NCBI GenBank assembly: GCA_964057225.1
Contig: OZ059895.1
Coordinates: 18,290,001 to 18,354,000 of the forward strand
Direction of reading: 5' to 3'
DNA: 64,000 nt
Source of the DNA: Auanema rhodensis
Lineage: Eukaryota > Animalia > Nematoda
Positions within the stretch are counted from its first letter, which is position 1. The number at the start of each line of letters is the position of its first letter. Below, in pieces: positions 1-12,300 of the stretch. Under the pieces are notes generated by a model. That model saw only the letters and a list, made by a program, of their open reading frames with translations. It was not told where the DNA came from and ran no database searches. A program made the position numbers and the translations under genes.

Positions 1-256
1 TTTCAAATAGATATATCAGAAATGATGTTAGAAGAATGATATTTAGAGATAAATTCGAATTACTAGATTAAATTGAAGTTTTTGTTTTAGATACAAAATT
101 GACTTGAAAGTTTGAAATATTAAATTAAATTAGAATTTTGGATATGAAATCAAGATAAATTTTTAGAGTAGAAATAGATTTCAAAGAAAGAGAAAGTAAT
201 TTAAAGGTGAGAAAAGTAGCGGCAATGGTCCATAGAGATTCGTCCCTTATAGACGA

Positions 257-274
257 ATCTCGGTGGAACCTCCA
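257..274 (-). promoter_or_regulatory. Primer-binding site complementary to the tRNA-Gln 3' end, copy 1
   Basis: Minus strand TGGAGGTTCCACCGAGAT. The + strand ATCTCGGTGGAACCT-CCA matches the metazoan tRNA-Gln 3' end plus CCA as I recall it. Confidence 0.85.
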
Positions 275-613
275 CGTTCCATATTGGTTCCTAGGGTTCC
301 GGCTAGGTAACCATATGGACTTTAATAGTGTGAATGCCATTGTAAAAGTAACAGAGAGTAGAGAAAAAGAAGTTTATTCAGAATATGGAAATACAATTAT
401 AAAAGCAAAATACAATAATCAAATAAATGAAACTACATGTTATGAGAAAGCCAACCTAGTTGCTTTCTCAGGGGTTTATATAGCAAAATATTAATTACAA
501 ATATAATTGAATTTATACCAAAAGTAGTTCAGGTCTAGTTTCTTATTGAATTCTATTAACCAAAAGTCGGTTGACGTTGTCAACCGCCTTCTTTATAAGA
601 CACGTATGGAACA
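275..613 (-). repeat. LTR-A, copy 1 (339 bp)
   Basis: Same as 9060-9398. Minus strand reads TGTTCCAT...ATGGAACG and is directly followed by the PBS. Confidence 0.85.
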
Positions 614-694
614 AGGTAAAACCAAGTGCATTATGACGCTTGAAGCATTTTCCAATGTCGTCATTTTCTACATTTTCAAAACAAAAAAGATTTC

Positions 695-766
695 TGGAGA
701 TATGGGGAATTGAACCCCAGCCCTCTCCCATGCGAAGGGAGCGCTCTACCTTTGAGCTATATCCCC
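695..766 (-). tRNA. tRNA-Ala(CGC), first copy, D-loop variant (CTCAAAGGTAG)
   Basis: GGGGATATAGCTCAAAGGTAGAGCGCTCCCTT-CGC-ATGGGAGAGGGCTGGGGTTCAATTCCCCATATCTCCA. Folds as a cloverleaf with G3:U70 and A73. Confidence 0.9.
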
Positions 767-915
767 ACACATGTACGTGTTTCAAGTTCTTTATTCAAAC
801 CTACAGTACTTCGAGACTATAAATGAAAAATTGGAGGTAAAACCAAGTGCATTATGACGCTTGAAGCATTTTCCAATGTCGTCATTTTCTACATTTTCAA
901 AACAAAAAAGATTTC

Positions 916-987
916 TGGAGATATGGGGAATTGAACCCCAGCCCTCTCCCATGCTAAGGGAGCGCTCTACCACTGAGCTATATCCCC
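916..987 (-). tRNA. tRNA-Ala(AGC), representative of ~176 copies
   Basis: GGGGATATAGCTCAGTGGTAGAGCGCTCCCTT-AGC-ATGGGAGAGGGCTGGGGTTCAATTCCCCATATCTCCA. Acceptor GGGGATA/TATCTCC, anticodon stem CTCCC/GGGAG, T stem TGGGG/CCCCA, A box TAGCTCAGTGG, B box GGTTCAATTCC. CCA is not encoded. Confidence 0.97.
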
Positions 988-1911
988 ACACATGTACGTG
1001 TTTCCAGTTCTTTATTGAAACCTACAGTACTTCGAGACTATAAATGAAATATTGGAGGTAAAACTAAGTGCTGTCTACGTTGTTTCAATTGAAAATCAAT
1101 GGGATACTTTCTGTATTATGACGCTTGAAGCATTTTCCAATGTGGTAGTCTTCTACATTTTCAAAACAAAAAGGATTTCTGGAGATATGGGGAATTGAAC
1201 CCCAGCCCTCTCCCATGCGAAGGGAGCGCTCTACCTTTGAGCTATATCCCCACACATGTACGTGTTTCAAGTTCTTTATTCAAACCTACAGTACTTCGAG
1301 ACTATAAATGAAAAATTGGAGGTAAAACCAAGTGCATTATGACGCTTGAAGCATTTTCCAATGTCGTCATTTTCTACATTTTCAAAACAAAAAAGATTTC
1401 TGGAGATATGGGGAATTGAACCCCAGCCCTCTCCCATGCTAAGGGAGCGCTCTACCACTGAGCTATATCCCCACACATGTACGTGTTTCCAGTTCTTTAT
1501 TGAAACCTACAGTACTTCGAGACTATAAATGAAATATTGGAGGTAAAACTAAGTGCTGTCTACGTTGTTTCAATTGAAAATCAATGGGATACTTTCTGTA
1601 TTATGACGCTTGAAGCATTTTCCAATGTGGTAGTCTTCTACATTTTCAAAACAAAAAAGATTTCTGGAGATATGGGGAATTGAACCCCAGCCCTCTCCCA
1701 TGCTAAGGGAGCGCTCTACCACTGAGCTATATCCCCACACATGTACGTGTTTCCAGTTCTTTATTGAAACCTACAGTACTTCGAGACTATAAATGAAATA
1801 TTGGAGGTAAAACCAAGTGCTGTCTACGTTGTTTCAATTGAAAATCAATGGGATACTTTCTGTATTATGACTCTTGAAGCATTTCTTAATGTCATTATCT
1901 TCTACATTTTC

Positions 1912-1921
1912 AAAACAAAAA
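1912..1921 (-). terminator. RNA polymerase III oligo-dT terminator (present in every unit)
   Basis: Minus strand TTTTTGTTTT begins 7 nt after the discriminator base. Some units have T6 or longer. Confidence 0.85.
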
Positions 1922-1928
1922 GGATTTC

Positions 1929-2000
1929 TGGAGATATGGGGAATTGAACCCCAGCCCTCTCCCATGCGAAGGGAGCGCTCTACCACTGAGCTATATCCCC
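1929..2000 (-). tRNA. tRNA-Ala(CGC), representative of ~51 copies
   Basis: Identical to the AGC gene except position 34 (+ strand catgcgaag versus catgctaag). Confidence 0.93.
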
Positions 2001-5000
2001 ACACATGTACGTGTTTCAAGTTGTTTATTCAAACCTACAGTACCTCGAGACTATAAATGAAATATTGGAGGTAAAACCAAGTGCTGTCTACGTTGTTTCA
2101 ATTGAAAATCAATAGAATACTCTCTGTATTATGACTCTTGAAGCATTTCTTAATGTCATTATCTTCTACATTTTCAAAACAAAAAGGATTTCTGGAGATA
2201 TGGGGAATTGAACCCCAGCCCTCTCCCATGCTAAGGGAGCGCTCTACCACTGAGCTATATCCCCACACATGTACGTGTTTCCAGTTCTTTATTGAAACCT
2301 ACAGTACTTCGAGACTATAAATGAAATATTGGAGGTAAAACTAAGTGCTGTCTACGTTGTTTCAATTGAAAATCAATGGGATACTTTCTGTATTATGACG
2401 CTTGAAGCATTTTCCAATGTGGTAGTCTTCTACATTTTCAAAACAAAAAGGATTTCTGGAGATATGGGGAATTGAACCCCAGACCTCTCCCATGCGAAGG
2501 GAGCGCTCTACCACTGAGCTATATCCCCACACATGTACGTGTTTCAAGTTGTTTATTCAAACCTACAGTACCTCGAGACTATAAATGAAGTATTGGAGGT
2601 GAAACCAAGTGCTGTCTACGTTGTTTCAATTGAAAATCAATAGAATACTCTCTGTATTATGACTCTTGAAGCATTTCTTAATGTCATTATCTTCTACATT
2701 TTCAAAACAAAAAGGATTTCTGGAGATATGGGGAATTGAACCCCAGCCCTCTCCCATGCGAAGGGAGCGCTCTACCACTGAGCTATATCCCCACACATGT
2801 ACGTGTTTCAAGTTCTTTATTCAAACCTACAGTACTTCGAGACTATAAATGAAATATTGGAGGTAAAACCAAGTGCTGTCTACGTTGTTTCAACTGAAAA
2901 TCAATAGAATACTCTCTGTATTATGACTCTTGAAGCATTTCTTAATGTCATTATCTTCTACATTTTCAAAACAAAAAGGATTTCTGGAGATATGGGGAAT
3001 TGAACCCCAGCCCTCTCCCATGCGAAGGGAGCGCTCTACCACTGAGCTATATCCCCACACATGTACGTGTTTCAAGTTCTTTATTCAAACCTACAGTACT
3101 TCGAGACTATAAATGAAATATTGGAGGTGAAACCAAGTGCTGTCTACGTTATTTCAGATAGAAAATAATAGAATAATCTCTGTATTATGACTCTTGAAGC
3201 ATTTCTTAATGTCATTATCTTCTACATTTTCAAAACAAAAAGGATTTCTGGAGATATGGGGAATTGAACCCCAGCCCTCTCCCATGCGAAGGGAGCGCTC
3301 TACCACTGAGCTATATCCCCACACATGTACGTGTTTCAAGTTCTTTATTCAAACCTACAGTACTTCGAGACTATAAATGAAATATTGGAGGTAAAACCAA
3401 GTGCTGTCTACGTTGTTTCAACTGAAAATCAATAGAATACTCTCTGTATTATGACTCTTGAAGCATTTCTTAATGTCATTATCTTCTACATTTTCAAAAC
3501 AAAAAGGATTTCTGGAGATATGGGGAATTGAACCCCAGCCCTCTCCCATGCTAAGGGAGCGCTCTACCACTGAGCTATATCCCCACACATGTACGTGTTT
3601 CAAGTTGTTTATTCAAACCTACAGTACCTCGAGACTATAAATGAAAAATTGGAGGTAAAACCAAGTGCTGTCTACGTTGTTTCAATTGAAAATCAATAGA
3701 ATACTTTCTGTATTATGACTCTTGAAGCATTTCTTAATGTCATTATCTTCTACATATCCAAAACAAAAAGGATTTCTGGAGATATGGGGAATTGAACCCC
3801 AGACCTCTCCCATGCGAAGGGAGCGCTCTACCACTGAGCTATATCCCTACACATGTACGTGTTTCAAGTTCTTTATTCAAACCTACAGTACTTCGAGACT
3901 ATAAATGAAATATTGGAGGTGAAACCAAGTGCTGTCTACGTTATTTCAGATAGAAAATAATAGAATAATCTCTGTATTATGACGCTTGAAGCATATTCCA
4001 ATGTCGTCATTTTCTACATTTTCAAAACAAAAAAGATTTCTGGAGATATGGGGAATTGAACCCCAGCCCTCTCCCATGCTAAGGGAGCGCTCTACCACTG
4101 AGCTATATCCCCACACATGTACGTGTTTCCAGTTCTTTATTGAAACCTACAGTACTTCGAGACTATAAATGAAATATTGGAGGTAAAACTAACTGCTGTC
4201 TACGTTGTTTCAATTGAAAATCAATGGGATACTTTCTGTATTATGACGCTTGAAGCATTTTCCAATGTGGTAGTCTTCTACATTTTCAAAACAAAAAGGA
4301 TTTCTGGAGATATGGGGAATTGAACCCCAGCCCTCTCCCATGCTAAGGGAGCGCTCTACCACTGAGCTATATCCCCACACATGTACGTGTTTCCAGTTCT
4401 TTATTGAAACCTACAGTACTTCGAGACTATAAATGAAATATTGGAGGTAAAACTAACTGCTGTCTACGTTGTTTCAATTGAAAATCAATGGGATACTTTC
4501 TGTATTATGACGCTTGAAGCATTTTCCAATGTGGTAGTCTTCTACATTTTCAAAACAAAAAGGATTTCTGGAGATATGGGGAATTGAACCCCAGCCCTCT
4601 CCCATGCTAAGGGAGCGCTCTACCACTGAGCTATATCCCCACACATGTACGTGTTTCCAGTTCTTTATTGAAACCTACAGTACTTCGAGACTATAAATGA
4701 AATATTGGAGGTGAAACCAAGTGCTGTCTACGTTGTTTCATATAAAAATCAATGTAATACTTTCTGTATTATGACTCTTGAAGCATTTCTTAATGTCATT
4801 ATCTTCTACATTTTTAAAACAAAAAGGATTTCTGGAGATATGGGGAATTGAACCCCAGCCCTCTCCCATGCTAAGGGAGCGCTCTACCACTGAGCTATAT
4901 CCCCACACATGTACGTGTTTCAAGTTCTTTATTCAAACCTTCAGTACTTCGAGACTATAAATGAAATATTGGAGGTGAAACCAAGTGCTGTCTACGTTGT

Positions 5001-5624
5001 TTCATATAAAAATCAATGTAATACTTTCTGTATTATGACTCTTGAAGCATTTCTTAATGTCATTATCTTCTACATTTTCAAAACAAAAAGGATTTCTGGA
5101 GATATGGGGAATTGAACCCCAGACCTCTCCCATGCGAAGGGAGCGCTCTACCACTGAGCTATATCCCCACACATGTACGTGTTTCAATTTCTTTATTCAA
5201 ACCTACAGTACCTCGAGACTATAAATGAAATATTGGAGGTGAAACCAAGTGCTGTCTACGTTGTTTCAATTGAAAATCAATGGGATACTTTCTGTATTAT
5301 GACTCTTGAAGCATTTCTTAATGTCATTATCTTCTACATTTTCAAAACAAAAAGGATTTCTGGAGATATGGGGAATTGAACCCCAGCCCTCTCCCATGCT
5401 AAGGGAGCGCTCTACCACTGAGCTATATCCCCACACATGTACGTGTTTCAAGTTCTTTATTCAAACCTTCAGTACTTCGAGACTATAAATGAAATATTGG
5501 AGGTGAAACCAAGTGCTGTCTACGTTATTTCAGATAGAAAATAATAGAATAATCTCTGTATTATGACGCTTGAAGCATTTTCCAATGTCGTCATTTTCTA
5601 CATTTTCAAAACAAAAAAGATTTC

Positions 5625-5696
5625 TGGAGATATGGGGAATTGAACCCCAGCCCTCTCCCATGCTAAGGGAGCGCTCTACCACTGAGCTATATCCCC
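5625..5696 (-). tRNA. tRNA-Ala(AGC) immediately downstream of the LTR element
   Basis: Canonical copy. Its 5' end (5696) lies 69-72 bp from the TSD at 5765-5768. Confidence 0.95.
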
Positions 5697-5764
5697 ACAC
5701 ATGTACGTGTTTCTAGTTCTTTATTGAAACCTACAGTACTTCGAGACTATAAATGAAAAATTGG

Positions 5765-5768
5765 AGGT
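5765..5768. repeat. 4-bp target-site duplication AGGT (partner at 9399-9402)
   Basis: Removing 5769-9402 restores aaatgaaaaattggAGGTaaaaccaagtgcattatg, which occurs uninterrupted at about 821-856. Confidence 0.85.
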
Positions 5769-6177
5769 CGTTCCATGGTGGTTCCCCAGGGTTCCGGCTG
5801 GGTAACCACATGGAATTATTTTCTTTTCTTCCAAATATAAATGATAAAGAGTATAGAGAGAAAGGTTTATTCATGATAAAGTATACAAATTACAATAATA
5901 AAAGTTACATAATGATTCCTAGTCGCAGCCCAAAGGACTCGTAAGGAAACCTTATATAGTATTCCTTACGAGCATAAAAAGTGGTTATATCAGGTCCGCG
6001 GAACTTGGTTCCGCTTGAATTGGGCTTTCTTTAATTAAACTTAATATGAAAAAGTGTTCGTTCATTGTTGCATTGAATTCCTGTTTCTCAAATGTAGCGT
6101 CAGCTATTTGTTTTTATAATGTTCCGTTTTATAAGCGATTGACGTTGTCAATCGCTCTACTTATAGGACACGTATGG
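5769..6177 (-). repeat. LTR-B: 3' LTR-like segment (409 bp), divergent from LTR-A and missing the first 4 nt (TGTT)
   Basis: Shares with LTR-A the ends (CCATACGTGTC.TATAA... and ...ATGGAACG), CTATATAA (5952-5959), AATAAA (5866-5871) and the terminal hairpins. The interior does not align by eye. Confidence 0.8.
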
Positions 6178-7933
6178 CTCCTCGTTTGCCAATGCAGAGT
6201 TGATAGGTGTTATCTGCCTGGCAAGGTATCATAGATAGGGCGATGACGGATAAGAATAGCGGTATGAACGGAAGTGTCTTCTTTGTTTTGACTGTTCCCT
6301 TTTCTACTTTGTTAACGTGAAAACGGACGCTGGGGCTTCTTGTGCGATCTCTGTGCCTGTTATGTGGTCCATATGAAGTGCTGCGATTTCGTTGTTGAAA
6401 TCCGCGATCAGGACAGTTTCCGCGGTTGTATCGGTCGTTTCCTCTGTGCTCCTGTCGATCGTTCCTTCTGCTATCATATCGATCGTTTCCTCTGCTGTTG
6501 TATCGATCATTGTATCTATCGTACCGTTGGGGGCTACGATAATTGTTGTATCCTCGTTGATATCCATTGTTTCTGTTATCCTGTCTGAAGTTGTGACGGT
6601 TATTTTGTCGATCCTCTTGGTATCTTGGTGAGCGGTATCCTCCTCTTCTTTGATTCCATTGCTCTTGTGGTTGTTGTGGTCTTGATTGATTTCCATAGAA
6701 TGTTATTGATTGGTGTGTTTGTGATCCGTCATAGATTTTCTCCTGTTGTGATGCTCTCATGTGGTTTATGAGACCATTATTAATCTCTAGTTGTTCCACG
6801 TCTTTAATCAAGTTGTTGACCAAGAGCGAAGGATCCTCGTCAGCTTCCACAGTTTCGGCAATAGTCACGGCTGCATCAAAGGTGATAGGGCTGCGGTTAT
6901 TGACATGTGTTCTTAAAGTCTTTCGTAGTCCTCCTAAGAATGAAACTCGTAGTATTCTTTCATCGGCTGTCGAGTCCATGTTGCATGATTCATAGGCAAG
7001 GTTTCTGCAGCGTTGAGCGAAATTTTGTACCGTTTCGTGCTCTCCTTGTTTCAAATGAGTGAGTTTTGTGAATGCTGCATCTCTCTTTTCTGGAGGTTGT
7101 AATTTCTCCGATAGTATGCGTTTGACGTGGTTCCATCCCTGGCGTAAGTCTTCTGCTGGTATAGTTCGAAGAGCTTCAGCGGCTCTATCCGTTCCGAGAA
7201 GTAGATAGAGATGGGAAAGTCTCTCGGCAATAGGGACTTGAAGGGCATCGAAATATCCTTCTAGTCTTTGCATGTAGAGGTTGAATGGAACCGATCCATC
7301 ATAAAGCGTAGGTTTGTGATGGCGAATAGAAACGTTGTGGGCTCTTGCAATAGGAGAGTTGTCTTGCTCCATCTGCTCTGCCATTTGAGGGCGACTTCTC
7401 TGCTCTGTAACATTCGAAGTCAAATTTACGTTATTGTCTGACGAAGAAGAGACAGGAGACAGAGAGTGCCCGTGCAAAGATTGATCAGTGGAAGAGGGAG
7501 AGTTTCTAGGAATAGGAGAGGTGAGGATTTCCGCATTTGCGGTTTGAACAAGGCGTTGAGGAGAAGTGTGATTTGGAGGACAAGTGTTAGTGCCGGTATT
7601 AACAACTGTTTTTGGAGAGTGAGAAGAGCGTTTGGGCGTAGATTTACTGGATGATGTTTTATTCTTATTCAAGCTAATTGCATGCCTAGTAGTTTTAATA
7701 GCAGTAGTATAAAGTTTCTTAGCAGTTAGCGGTGTACCCGGAATAGGGGGTAATTTCTTTGATTTCGCGTTCGTTTTCGGATATTTCGCATCTGGTCGGA
7801 ATGCATCCGGTGGTCCTCTTTTTCTTTGGTTTCTATGCAGTGCTGCTTCCACTGTCTGAGTTTTCTCTGCGCTATTCGTAGCATTTTGGGCAATATTTCC
7901 CGGCGGAGGATTTTGATTCGCTGCGTCAGCCAT
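6161..7933 (-). CDS. gag: Retrotransposon Gag (Ty3/gypsy-type capsid), 590 aa, with a hydrophobic C-terminal segment; stop codon lies inside LTR-B
   Basis: The capsid-like region PTLYDGSVPFNLYMQRLEGYF...LKQGEHETVQNFAQRCRNLA...FLGGL...PITFDAAVTIAETVE contains the major-homology-like QxxxEtVxxFxxR motif. It is followed by an R/N/D/Y-rich basic tail with no CCHC knuckle. The ORF lies downstream of a PBS. Confidence 0.85.
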   Translation of the reverse strand: MADAANQNPPPGNIAQNATNSAEKTQTVEAALHRNQRKRGPPDAFRPDAKYPKTNAKSKKLPPIPGTPLTAKKLYTTAIKTTRHAISLNKNKTSSSKSTPKRSSHSPKTVVNTGTNTCPPNHTSPQRLVQTANAEILTSPIPRNSPSSTDQSLHGHSLSPVSSSSDNNVNLTSNVTEQRSRPQMAEQMEQDNSPIARAHNVSIRHHKPTLYDGSVPFNLYMQRLEGYFDALQVPIAERLSHLYLLLGTDRAAEALRTIPAEDLRQGWNHVKRILSEKLQPPEKRDAAFTKLTHLKQGEHETVQNFAQRCRNLAYESCNMDSTADERILRVSFLGGLRKTLRTHVNNRSPITFDAAVTIAETVEADEDPSLLVNNLIKDVEQLEINNGLINHMRASQQEKIYDGSQTHQSITFYGNQSRPQQPQEQWNQRRGGYRSPRYQEDRQNNRHNFRQDNRNNGYQRGYNNYRSPQRYDRYNDRYNSRGNDRYDSRRNDRQEHRGNDRYNRGNCPDRGFQQRNRSTSYGPHNRHRDRTRSPSVRFHVNKVEKGTVKTKKTLPFIPLFLSVIALSMIPCQADNTYQLCIGKRGAIRVL

Positions 7934-8507
7934 CTTTGTTGGTTTCCTGGAAGGAAATTATTAACCAACAAAGACTGAGCTTATATTATACAAAACGTAA
8001 GAGACAATATGGGGTTGGTATGCGCGACTCCTGTTCCTGTCAGGGGGCCAGCCTGCAGCGGGTCTCTAGTCGGAGAATAGCCTGGTCAGGTTCATACACG
8101 AGTCCGCAACTACGTGTGACCTTTAGTAAAGGACCAAGTTCTTATCTCTCGAAGAGGCATGAGATATGAGACAGTGGTCTGTGTATTGCTCCTTTTCAGT
8201 CATGGACAAGATCAGGTACACAGGCTTCTCATACTCACTTTTCCAGACTTCTCTTACCTAAGCAAACCCCCAAAAGACGTTCCCTTTTAACGTTACTTCT
8301 GTTCCCCTGGGTCTTGCTAGGTGGGACCACTCAACTTCAAAATATTCTTTAATTCTCATATGGGACCAAAAAGGGTTAATTTCAAATGATTGCGCGTCTT
8401 ATATCAAAAAGTGTACGCCTCCGCGCGATGTCCCGAGAATGTCTGGTATTGTTTCTTACGGGGCTTTCTCATAAAAATGCGTTAGATATCAAGAATAGTG
8501 GTTTTGT

Positions 8508-8655
8508 TTATGAATCAATGTTTTCAGAATGATTTATGAATAGATTTTCAAAATTAGCTTGTGATAAGAAGTTTTCAAGATGACTTATGGGTAAGTGTTG
8601 CAATATGAATAAATGTCTTTAAGATATTTCATGAATTGATAGTTTTTAATATTAT
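8508..8655. repeat. Degenerate ~25-bp tandem repeat in the element leader
   Basis: About 6 loose copies of ttatgaat(N4-5)gttttcaagatga, for example ttatgaatcaatgttttcagaatgat, ttatgaatagattttcaaaattagc and ttgtgataagaagttttcaagatgac. Confidence 0.5.
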
Positions 8656-9041
8656 TCGTGGTTAAATATTTTAATATGCTTGTTCCAAAAAGAGTTTTTA
8701 TGCATTATATGCTTTTAACATACAGGAAAGTAGAGGAATAAAGTAGGAATATAGATTGTAATAGATAATATGTATAAGACATTTTTTTCAAATAGATATA
8801 TCAGAAATGATGTTAGAAGAATGATATTTAGAGATAAATTCGAATTACTAGATTAAATTGAAGTTTTTGTTTTAGATACAAAATTGACTTGAAAGTTTGA
8901 AATATTAAATTAAATTAGAATTTTGGATATGAAATCAAGATAAATTTTTAGAGTAGAAATAGATTTCAAAGAAAGAGAAAGTAATTTAAAGGTGAGAAAA
9001 GTAGCGGCAATGGTCCATAGAGATTCGTCCCTTATAGACGA

Positions 9042-9059
9042 ATCTCGGTGGAACCTCCA
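9042..9059 (-). promoter_or_regulatory. Primer-binding site, tRNA-Gln
   Basis: TGGAGGTTCCACCGAGAT(TCG) directly follows the LTR-A end. It has 18-21 nt of complementarity to ...CGAAUCUCGGUGGAACCUCCA. Confidence 0.88.
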
Positions 9060-9398
9060 CGTTCCATATTGGTTCCTAGGGTTCCGGCTAGGTAACCATA
9101 TGGACTTTAATAGTGTGAATGCCATTGTAAAAGTAACAGAGAGTAGAGAAAAAGAAGTTTATTCAGAATATGGAAATACAATTATAAAAGCAAAATACAA
9201 TAATCAAATAAATGAAACTACATGTTATGAGAAAGCCAACCTAGTTGCTTTCTCAGGGGTTTATATAGCAAAATATTAATTACAAATATAATTGAATTTA
9301 TACCAAAAGTAGTTCAGGTCTAGTTTCTTATTGAATTCTATTAACCAAAAGTCGGTTGACGTTGTCAACCGCCTTCTTTATAAGACACGTATGGAACA
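9060..9398 (-). repeat. LTR-A: 5' LTR (339 bp)
   Basis: Starts TGTTCCAT at the TSD and ends ATGGAACG at the PBS. On the minus strand a TATA-like CTATATAA (9261-9268) precedes AATAAA (9158-9163), in U3-R-U5 order. Confidence 0.85.
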
Positions 9399-12300
9399 AG
9401 GTAAAACCAAGTGCATTATGACGCTTGAAGCATTTTCCAATGTCGTCATTTTCTACATTTTCAAAACAAAAAAGATTTCTGGAGATATGGGGAATTGAAC
9501 CCCAGCCCTCTCCCATGCGAAGGGAGCGCTCTACCTTTGAGCTATATCCCCACACATGTACGTGTTTCAAGTTCTTTATTCAAACCTACAGTACTTCGAG
9601 ACTATAAATGAAAAATTGGAGGTAAAACCAAGTGCATTATGACGCTTGAAGCATTTTCCAATGTCGTCATTTTCTACATTTTCAAAACAAAAAAGATTTC
9701 TGGAGATATGGGGAATTGAACCCCAGCCCTCTCCCATGCTAAGGGAGCGCTCTACCACTGAGCTATATCCCCACACATGTACGTGTTTCCAGTTCTTTAT
9801 TGAAACCTACAGTACTTCGAGACTATAAATGAAATATTGGAGGTAAAACTAAGTGCTGTCTACGTTGTTTCAATTGAAAATCAATGGGATACTTTCTGTA
9901 TTATGACGCTTGAAGCATTTTCCAATGTGGTAGTCTTCTACATTTTCAAAACAAAAAGGATTTCTGGAGATATGGGGAATTGAACCCCAGCCCTCTCCCA
10001 TGCGAAGGGAGCGCTCTACCTTTGAGCTATATCCCCACACATGTACGTGTTTCAAGTTCTTTATTCAAACCTACAGTACTTCGAGACTATAAATGAAAAA
10101 TTGGAGGTAAAACCAAGTGCATTATGACGCTTGAAGCATTTTCCAATGTCGTCATTTTCTACATTTTCAAAACAAAAAAGATTTCTGGAGATATGGGGAA
10201 TTGAACCCCAGCCCTCTCCCATGCTAAGGGAGCGCTCTACCACTGAGCTATATCCCCACACATGTACGTGTTTCCAGTTCTTTATTGAAACCTACAGTAC
10301 TTCGAGACTATAAATGAAATATTGGAGGTAAAACTAAGTGCTGTCTACGTTGTTTCAATTGAAAATCAATGGGATACTTTCTGTATTATGACGCTTGAAG
10401 CATTTTCCAATGTGGTAGTCTTCTACATTTTCAAAACAAAAAAGATTTCTGGAGATATGGGGAATTGAACCCCAGCCCTCTCCCATGCTAAGGGAGCGCT
10501 CTACCACTGAGCTATATCCCCACACATGTACGTGTTTCCAGTTCTTTATTGAAACCTACAGTACTTCGAGACTATAAATGAAATATTGGAGGTAAAACCA
10601 AGTGCTGTCTACGTTGTTTCAATTGAAAATCAATGGGATACTTTCTGTATTATGACTCTTGAAGCATTTCTTAATGTCATTATCTTCTACATTTTCAAAA
10701 CAAAAAGGATTTCTGGAGATATGGGGAATTGAACCCCAGCCCTCTCCCATGCGAAGGGAGCGCTCTACCACTGAGCTATATCCCCACACATGTACGTGTT
10801 TCAAGTTGTTTATTCAAACCTACAGTACCTCGAGACTATAAATGAAATATTGGAGGTAAAACCAAGTGCTGTCTACGTTGTTTCAATTGAAAATCAATAG
10901 AATACTCTCTGTATTATGACTCTTGAAGCATTTCTTAATGTCATTATCTTCTACATTTTCAAAACAAAAAGGATTTCTGGAGATATGGGGAATTGAACCC
11001 CAGCCCTCTCCCATGCTAAGGGAGCGCTCTACCACTGAGCTATATCCCCACACATGTACGTGTTTCCAGTTCTTTATTGAAACCTACAGTACTTCGAGAC
11101 TATAAATGAAATATTGGAGGTAAAACTAAGTGCTGTCTACGTTGTTTCAATTGAAAATCAATGGGATACTTTCTGTATTATGACGCTTGAAGCATTTTCC
11201 AATGTGGTAGTCTTCTACATTTTCAAAACAAAAAGGATTTCTGGAGATATGGGGAATTGAACCCCAGACCTCTCCCATGCGAAGGGAGCGCTCTACCACT
11301 GAGCTATATCCCCACACATGTACGTGTTTCAAGTTGTTTATTCAAACCTACAGTACCTCGAGACTATAAATGAAGTATTGGAGGTGAAACCAAGTGCTGT
11401 CTACGTTGTTTCAATTGAAAATCAATAGAATACTCTCTGTATTATGACTCTTGAAGCATTTCTTAATGTCATTATCTTCTACATTTTCAAAACAAAAAGG
11501 ATTTCTGGAGATATGGGGAATTGAACCCCAGCCCTCTCCCATGCGAAGGGAGCGCTCTACCACTGAGCTATATCCCCACACATGTACGTGTTTCAAGTTC
11601 TTTATTCAAACCTACAGTACTTCGAGACTATAAATGAAATATTGGAGGTAAAACCAAGTGCTGTCTACGTTGTTTCAACTGAAAATCAATAGAATACTCT
11701 CTGTATTATGACTCTTGAAGCATTTCTTAATGTCATTATCTTCTACATTTTCAAAACAAAAAGGATTTCTGGAGATATGGGGAATTGAACCCCAGCCCTC
11801 TCCCATGCGAAGGGAGCGCTCTACCACTGAGCTATATCCCCACACATGTACGTGTTTCAAGTTCTTTATTCAAACCTACAGTACTTCGAGACTATAAATG
11901 AAATATTGGAGGTGAAACCAAGTGCTGTCTACGTTATTTCAGATAGAAAATAATAGAATAATCTCTGTATTATGACTCTTGAAGCATTTCTTAATGTCAT
12001 TATCTTCTACATTTTCAAAACAAAAAGGATTTCTGGAGATATGGGGAATTGAACCCCAGCCCTCTCCCATGCGAAGGGAGCGCTCTACCACTGAGCTATA
12101 TCCCCACACATGTACGTGTTTCAAGTTCTTTATTCAAACCTACAGTACTTCGAGACTATAAATGAAATATTGGAGGTAAAACCAAGTGCTGTCTACGTTG
12201 TTTCAACTGAAAATCAATAGAATACTCTCTGTATTATGACTCTTGAAGCATTTCTTAATGTCATTATCTTCTACATTTTCAAAACAAAAAGGATTTCTGG

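Follow-up and report, generated by a model that had tools for sequence, protein, structure and literature searches.

Apparent integration of two Ty3/gypsy families upstream of RNA polymerase III genes in the nematode Auanema rhodensis, with a chimera of both in a tRNA-Ala array

The genomic distribution of two retrotransposon families in the nematode Auanema rhodensis suggests that both integrate, in either orientation, ~50-90 bp upstream of transfer RNA (tRNA) and 5S ribosomal RNA (rRNA) genes. The families, here called fam339 and fam413, meet in a single insert at 5769-9398 of the stretch of DNA that we analysed (64,000 nucleotides of contig OZ059895.1, assembly GCA_964057225.1; C3:18290001-18354000 of the 181-Mb host assembly), which we refer to as the window. 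Judged by its sequence, this insert is a dead, one-off chimera of two related Ty3/gypsy families, with a long terminal repeat (LTR) from each. [quoted passage not shown] Animals would then have their first such case, a third independent origin after yeasts and dictyostelids, and the process would be precise enough for families to reuse single nucleotides.

Each LTR type is present in at least 40 copies at 98-100% identity, the query for fam413 having lacked the TGTT and the final G of the canonical 413-bp LTR. By this measure the two LTR types belong to two separate, young families. The LTRs of fam339 are mostly paired ~11.4 kb apart, and a complete copy is an 11.7-kb Ty3/gypsy element. Those of fam413 are mostly paired ~3.75 kb and sometimes ~11.4-11.8 kb apart; its common form is a 4.15-kb deletion derivative, and at least some of its long copies of ~12 kb have a pol C-terminus (for example C6:10053647-10065890). 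Complete copies of both families share the LTR termini TGTTCC...GGAACG, a primer-binding site and 4-bp target duplications, and thus display the hallmarks of LTR elements: identical LTRs, a tRNA primer-binding site, a polypurine region and a short target duplication. The region ahead of the 3' LTR is near-identical between them (...agctgaggtcagctacttttc.atat.aggca), and the polyprotein C-terminus is conserved. A pattern search located a host tRNA-Gln(CTG) gene (L069:1442-1513) ending in ...AATCTCGGTGGAACCT; this end plus CCA matches the 19 nt of the primer-binding site, which is therefore of tRNA-Gln type. The last 12 nt of the unique 5' region (U5) of fam413 (CACCATGGAAC-G; window 5769-5781; L062) also complement nt 2-12 of the host tRNA-Gln and adjoin the 19-nt site, a possible second primer contact or stem between U5 and primer-binding site; fam339 retains only 7 nt of this complementarity.

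Flanks of 1.5 kb in both directions were scanned at 60 LTR loci, using ARAGORN, Rfam and a BLAST search for 5S genes; the event table covers these 60 and leaves out 20 further LTR loci, among them a fam413 copy in the same tRNA-Ala array at C3:18265719. All 60 loci lie in tandem arrays of tRNA or 5S rRNA genes. The tRNA arrays hit are those of Ala, Asp, Arg-TCG, Arg-ACG, Pro-CGG, Pro-AGG, Gly-GCC, Gly-TCC, Leu-TAG, Ile-AAT and Lys-CTT, and some of the targeted 5S arrays are linked to U2 or U4 small nuclear RNA (snRNA) genes. A first look across the genome gave ~28,000 tRNA gene candidates, a count that puts only roughly 5% of the genome in tRNA arrays; confinement to arrays is thus itself non-random.

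Position within the arrays is narrower still. For 26 insertions in 12 array types, we measured how far the element lies from the facing gene's 5' end, counting the duplication. The median was 69 bp upstream (interquartile 60-75 bp, range 29-105 bp), with 23 of the 26 falling at 50-90 bp. The 14 insertions in 5S arrays lie 50-89 bp upstream, in spacers of ~410 bp; in arrays with spacers of 77-87 bp, the source of the measured values of 29 and 36 bp, the distance is about 25-36 bp, the facing gene there being a truncated tRNA-Leu or tRNA-Ile copy. Fourteen insertions are head-to-head with the gene and 12 run in the same direction. Their target duplications show no consensus (ACCT, GTAG, AGAA, TTGT, GTTA, TAAC, ATGT, TTAC, TTAA, CTAA, GTCT, TGGA and ATGA are among them). 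Near-identical nucleotides have been used more than once: two insertions in the tRNA-Gly(GCC) array lie at 62 and 62 bp in opposite orientations, fam413 and fam339 sites in the tRNA-Leu array are 4 nt apart (29/25), and several sites in 5S arrays were hit two or three times. Under uniform placement in array units, the chance of the observed window is ~10^-20 (log10 P = -20.6), and ~10^-16 for 5S alone, though some copies are array duplicates, so that the events are not all independent and these probabilities overstate independence. The 5S arrays alone hold at least 11 distinct sites or orientations.

As a pattern, then, the preference for a window upstream of tRNA and 5S genes is evident in the assembled copies, and we accept targeting as its best reading, since the selection of harmless sites fails to explain a narrow window in the spacers of thousand-copy arrays. 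Elements could instead land at random, persist where arrays make them harmless and be amplified by unequal crossing-over, and both the abundance of arrayed tRNA gene candidates and the several element copies that are clearly array duplicates agree with such a history. However, every spacer position of a thousand-copy array should be equally harmless, and a 40-80-bp window in spacers of 150-800 bp would go unexplained across 12 unrelated array types, both orientations and differing duplications; we regard survival and amplification as a very improbable source of the Pol III link. An earlier note on the window, made from its letters alone, had placed the insert 69-72 bp upstream of a tRNA-Ala gene and proposed a tRNA-gene-targeting gypsy lineage in an animal. 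The measured distance from the element's 3' end to the 5' end of tRNA-Ala(AGC) is 71 nt (67 nt without the duplication), and the tabulated distances bear out the proposal and extend it to 5S genes. The nearest polyprotein relatives are from nematodes, and the other insertions scanned for both families, which the note had suggested checking for random placement, all lie in Pol III arrays.

A full fam339 copy contains a single frame of ~2950 codons, uninterrupted in several copies, in the order gag, glycoprotein B (gB)-like class III fusogen, protease, reverse transcriptase, RNase H and integrase. Pfam identified an aspartyl protease (1301-1396), RVT_1 (1645-1804), RNase H (1867-1997) and an integrase (2111-2277), and this order of pol domains places the family in Ty3/gypsy (Metaviridae). 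Between gag and protease (L061:6000-7500, minus strand), the class III viral fusion glycoprotein domain PF24664 scored 61 bits (cut-off 27), while the herpesvirus gB model PF00606 scored 28-31 bits, under its cut-off of 43. The nearest polyproteins, by best-match identity, are from Caenorhabditis auriculariae (42%), C. nigoni (37%) and Auanema (68% across a short stretch); they carry the same domains, including both PF24664 and PF00606. The gag-env-pol order is that described for nematode elements (PMC13524379).

The 4.15-kb form of fam413 has three open frames, and no Pfam domain was found in any of them. They comprise a gag N-terminus of 145 amino acids (50% identity to fam339 gag), a pol C-terminus of 129 amino acids (63% identity to fam339, gap-free, over the last 104 pol codons) and an unrelated frame of 200 amino acids. 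With LTRs, primer-binding site and polypurine region retained and no pol, it is a non-autonomous LTR element. The 200-codon frame (L062:1118-1717, minus strand) does not resemble the fam339 polyprotein; it might be cargo or have arisen by chance. A Pfam search of a downstream open reading frame (ORF) of 211 amino acids gave no significant match.

In Ty1, Ty3 and the Dictyostelium elements, integrase or the ORF1 protein is tethered to Pol III or TFIIIB (PMC5911963, PMC7459421, PMC8632968, PMC6101501). An integrase tethered to the Pol III transcription complex is, we infer, the likely mechanism in fam339 and fam413 as well, and a window just upstream of the region presumed to be occupied by TFIIIB would fit such tethering. 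In fam339, the integrase core and a GPY/F-like region are followed by a tail of ~210 residues in which Pfam found no significant domain, and we conjecture that this tail may make the contact. The C. auriculariae relative has no such tail, its protein stopping at that point, and sister families of the same genome conserve it (74%, 52-62% and 37%). Over its last 100 residues fam339 and fam413 align gap-free at 63% identity, as against only 50% for the gag N-termini.

Pol III targeting is the textbook 'safe-haven' strategy, so far worked out only in yeasts and Dictyostelium and usually credited to their compact genomes. Ty3 (Metaviridae) and Ty1 (Pseudoviridae) resemble fam339 and fam413 in their variable target sequences and use of both orientations (PMC5911963, PMC8632968, PMC7459421). 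Ty3 insertions fall within a few bp of where transcription starts, whereas fam339 and fam413 lie at 50-105 bp in most arrays and so are not of Ty3 type; Ty1 spreads over ~1 kb with a period of ~80 bp, in contrast to their single window at ~50-90 bp. Further differences from the yeast elements are the animal host, the gB-like fusogen inside a single gag-pol frame, LTRs ending in ...AACG and an integrase tail without a known domain. In Dictyostelium, the LTR elements DGLT-A and Skipper-2 and the non-LTR element TRE5-A show convergent tRNA targeting at defined upstream distances, ~48 bp for TRE5-A, which is near the window seen here (PMC5006619, PMC6101501). The Dictyostelium elements inhabit compact genomes with dispersed tRNA genes, whereas fam339 and fam413 occupy huge tandem arrays in a 181-Mb genome. 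DGLT-A inserts nearer to its gene, at 13-33 bp.

Among animal elements, the errantivirus-like gag-env(gB)-pol elements of nematodes have the same ORF order and the same herpesvirus-gB/class III fusogen as fam339. R2, a sequence-specific non-LTR element, is likewise an animal retroelement of tandem arrays of multicopy RNA genes. Mutsu in 5S arrays, Dewa in tRNA arrays and Keno in U2 are animal non-LTR elements of small RNA arrays. Such R2-like elements cut a fixed sequence within the gene with an endonuclease of their own, whereas fam339 and fam413 use an integrase and insert upstream of many unrelated Pol III genes without a consensus. For env-bearing animal gypsy elements, no tRNA genes, integration sites or site preference are mentioned in PMC13524379, and the reviews PMC5911963 and PMC5006619 treat Pol III targeting in yeasts and dictyostelids without mention of animals. 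The further papers retrieved on Pol III targeting likewise deal with yeasts or Dictyostelium. We found no animal case of Pol III-gene targeting in the literature searched, whose coverage is incomplete and gives no proof of novelty. The strategy itself is a familiar one; what differs is the kingdom of the host, the type of element and the window of insertion.

If this interpretation is correct, an animal lineage would provide an independent test of the safe-haven idea, in a retrovirus-like, fusogen-bearing element whose 181-Mb host genome has arrayed tRNA genes by the tens of thousands. A new contact between integrase and host would become available for mapping, and the case would bear on whether such elements help to form the huge tRNA and 5S arrays or are themselves moulded by them. 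The chimera, for its part, is a minor by-product, which shows that related families meet at the same sites and have their DNA ends joined.

The window is almost wholly a tandem tRNA-Ala array, in which ARAGORN finds 227 genes in 64 kb, on the minus strand. The array has a period of 264 bp, with a few 221-bp units lacking 43 bp of spacer, and the insert is its sole interruption within the window (Table 1). Compared with complete copies by BLAST, the insert, which lies on the minus strand, resolves into exactly two pieces, fam339 nt 1-3221 (99.35%) and fam413 LTR nt 5-413 (100%). At the joint, fam339 would canonically continue with GTATTT... and the fam413 LTR would be preceded by ...aggcaTGTT; they have zero bases in common. 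The 409-bp LTR of the chimera is therefore the 413-bp LTR without its first 4 nt (TGTT), and the adjoining polypurine tract has gone as well, so that the chimera itself, with unequal LTRs and no polypurine tract, lacks the hallmarks of an LTR element. Its two LTRs are alike over ~45 nt at each end (83-85% identity), and beyond the ends similarity is limited to patches of 70-76%, towards U5. After a leader of ~1.1 kb, a frame opens with the ATG at 7933 and runs to 6161. Its 590 codons begin with the first 585 of the ~2950-codon gag-env-pol frame, which is severed at the junction.

Pattern searches of the genome found mixed junctions of this kind at only C3:18286975/18290606 and C3:18295760/18299391. 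Both sites belong to one block repeated in tandem at 8785 bp and 100% identical across ~8.5 kb, the product of an unequal crossover that happened very recently or else of duplication in the assembly. No other mixed LTR pair occurs among the top 40 matches of each LTR, which rules out an element whose normal architecture has one LTR of each type. The 8785-bp block (window -4000 to 13300; C3:18286000-18303300) comprises the chimera and ~19.5 array units.

AGGT is present once in each intact array unit and twice around the insert. The right 76-nt flank is the same as in four intact 147-nt spacers, and the left 71-nt flank differs from these at 2 positions, one of them private. The left flank reads as a mosaic in which a T is private, a G is characteristic of 190-nt spacers and an A of the 147-nt variant. 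The flanking tRNA genes are AGC on the left and CGC on the right, the reverse of their order around intact 147-nt spacers. The earlier note had assigned both flanks to one rare haplotype, which holds approximately: the left flank departs from it at two positions, and the flanking isoacceptors are swapped. It had also supposed the gag ORF to be intact, and what remains is instead the truncated frame described above, ending in 5 LTR codons. Its other descriptions proved sound: both ends abut the same AGGT (5765-5768 and 9399-9402); the LTRs of 339 and 409 bp align only at their ends, apart from the patches just mentioned; they represent two related families, each recovered separately by BLAST; and the gag of one has been joined, through a non-homologous junction, to the LTR of the other. 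The recurrence of this architecture at independent loci, which it had proposed to look for, was not seen beyond the two tandem-duplicate copies.

Both LTRs of an element are copied from one template of unique 3' region, repeat and unique 5' region (U3-R-U5), whatever strand transfers happen. This known mechanism rules out unequal LTRs through reverse transcription of co-packaged RNAs, and the joint must accordingly have been made at the DNA level. A homologous or microhomology-mediated crossover at the junction is excluded by the absence of common bases. Descent from a 3.8-kb fam339 deletion derivative is excluded by its breakpoints, ~2961 and 10884 as opposed to 3221.

As the origin of the chimera we slightly favour, and only tentatively, a single integration of an end-joined hybrid complementary DNA (cDNA) over stacked insertions followed by deletion. 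A linear fam413 cDNA, its U3 end nibbled by 4 nt, would have been end-joined to a broken fam339 cDNA. The hybrid would keep one valid U3 end and one valid U5 end and could integrate once. If the fam413 part was a full cDNA and not an LTR-length fragment, it would later have been cut to one LTR by LTR-LTR recombination. The chimera, with its one 4-bp duplication, would subsequently have been copied by the 8785-bp tandem duplication. This route accounts without coincidence for the single duplication, for the lack of any other insertion at this AGGT and for a joint 4 nt from the U3 terminus. There is also a precedent in the tRNA-Pro(CGG) array (C1:8615261-8616079; L014:1497-2320 / L006), where two fam413 LTRs abut head to tail. 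The second LTR lacks its first 2 nt at the junction (...GGAACG followed directly by TTCCATACG), and a single ATGA duplication encloses both LTRs. The arrangement resembles an end-to-end cDNA junction that has integrated, a structure that stacking cannot produce. A recombinant cDNA had been the earlier note's alternative; single integration fits it, with the amendment that the molecule must be an end-joined hybrid, since reverse transcription gives equal LTRs.

That note's first choice was stacking. Fully worked out, it would have fam339 and then fam413 insert at one nucleotide of a unit, or at the equivalent position of its neighbour, after which a non-homologous deletion would have taken away fam339 from nt 3222 onwards together with the internal AGGT and 4 nt at the start of the fam413 LTR. 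In a variant, the second integration would have been aberrant, with targeting setting its U5 end while its U3 end became joined to the resident copy by end-joining. Several features of the arrays lend this some credit. Nucleotide-level hot spots exist, with independent insertions 0-4 nt apart in tRNA-Gly(GCC), tRNA-Leu and 5S arrays; fam413 adjoins the targeted tRNA, the order expected of the later arrival; rearranged elements, namely shared-LTR tandems and internal deletions, are frequent in these arrays; and the insert's flanks are a mosaic of unit types. Against it, two hits on one nucleotide would be needed, together with a deletion ending by chance 4 nt inside the LTR terminus, and other deletions in both families end at arbitrary internal points and not at termini. 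Pattern searches across the genome found no complete fam339 or fam413 element and no solo LTR at the chimera's AGGT, only the two duplicate copies of the chimera. The internal duplication is likewise untraceable, there being no AGGT at the junction, though the deletion would have erased such traces. Stacking, its aberrant-integration variants included, therefore strikes us as possible but rather doubtful.

The explanation as a whole, in which two targeting families tethered through an integrase tail gave rise to the chimera through a hybrid cDNA, is in our view probably correct, and a number of points count against parts of it. Targeting is read from fixed copies rather than from new integrations, and one or two insertions remain unplaced (in the tRNA-Lys array, and a fam339 copy in a 667-bp tRNA-Ile array). 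The role of the tail is conjecture drawn from protein sequence. Two Caenorhabditis relatives have no adjacent tRNA or 5S genes, so the habit seems specific to the present lineage. The flanks of the insert are not a perfect single-unit haplotype, and its final sequence is equally compatible with a hybrid cDNA and with two insertions plus a deletion, and cannot distinguish between them.

A further point concerns the junction itself. We searched the short-read Logan contigs of four other public runs with 5698-9478, a query that avoids the tRNA genes. Contigs of the four runs cover all parts of the insert at >=95% identity, and every one leaves the insert between 6177 and 6178, running on into what is canonical for its own family. 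An assembly artefact of a highly repetitive array might have given rise to the chimera, to its duplicate or to both, to which the unbridged junction and the complete identity of the two copies and the 8.5 kb around them would correspond. However, mis-joins form inside shared repeats, and an artefact is unlikely here because the joint lies between unrelated sequences with no base in common. The fam339 part also has variants of its own relative to other copies. Such contigs collapse multi-copy families onto the majority path and drop rare variants, and their silence is not evidence of absence. We hold an artefact to be a slim prospect.

Table 1. Positions of the insert's components and of neighbouring features in the window.
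Feature	Position	Strand	Remarks
Left target-site duplication AGGT (ACCT in element sense)	5765..5768		AGGT single in intact units
3' LTR, fam413 type, nt 5-413 of canonical 413 bp	5769..6177	-	100% identity with a copy elsewhere in the genome
Chimera junction, fam339 position 3221 to fam413 LTR nt 5	6177..6178	-	No base in common
Truncated polyprotein frame, 585 fam339 gag codons + 5 LTR codons	6161..7933	-	Retrotrans_gag at residues 248-337
fam339 leader/5' untranslated region, including AT-rich stretch	7934..9040	-	99.35% identity to full-length fam339 copy across element nt 1-3221
Primer-binding site, 19 nt	9041..9059	-	Complements 3' end (+CCA) of host tRNA-Gln(CTG)
5' LTR, fam339 type, 339 bp, TGTTCC...GGAACG	9060..9398	-	LTR comparison with genomic copies
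Right target-site duplication AGGT	9399..9402		Second AGGT copy
tRNA-Ala(AGC)	5624..5697	-	ARAGORN; 5' end faces element 3' end at 71 nt
tRNA-Ala(CGC)	9479..9552	-	ARAGORN; 3' end 80 nt from element 5' end
Second, identical chimera copy, terminal part	1..617	-	5' LTR 275-613, AGGT 614-617; within 8785-bp tandem duplication beginning upstream of window

Other copies of the two families are rearranged in various ways. At three loci (L021, L027 and L056), LTRs with a polypurine region before them and a primer-binding site after them mark tandem elements that share one LTR, the outcome to be expected if elements of a single array recombine or if the cDNA is multimeric. The 3.8-kb internal-deletion derivative of fam339 joins ~nt 2961 to ~nt 10884 (L049/L058, C4:16308083-16311873), and a fam413 deletion copy (L019, C7:9560740) joins LTR nt 341 to internal nt 3232. 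One fam339 LTR (L053, C3:13225238) lacks a matching duplication, and to one side of it the 5S array runs in inverted orientation; this is probably an inversion breakpoint from recombination between two LTRs. Further related gypsy families, at least four in number, contain frames of 2930-3100 codons with an integrase C-terminus 37-76% identical, and many of these share their chromosome regions with the tRNA and 5S arrays (C8, C5, C6 and C7, mid-chromosome).

The host arrays are themselves structured. In one, 5S alternates with U4 snRNA in a 471-bp unit (L049, L050, C4:16.28-16.31 Mb), and in another it is linked to U2 (L044, L055, C1:10.96-11.09 Mb). In the tRNA-Ala array, AGC and CGC isoacceptors are intermixed over the first 30 kb of the window, and thereafter AGC occurs alone. 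Beside the chimera (window 9479-10258, and also at 694-1473), the array forms a 485-bp higher-order repeat of tRNA-CGC, 147-nt spacer, tRNA-AGC and 190-nt spacer. The 43-bp spacer deletion is flanked by two TGT triplets.

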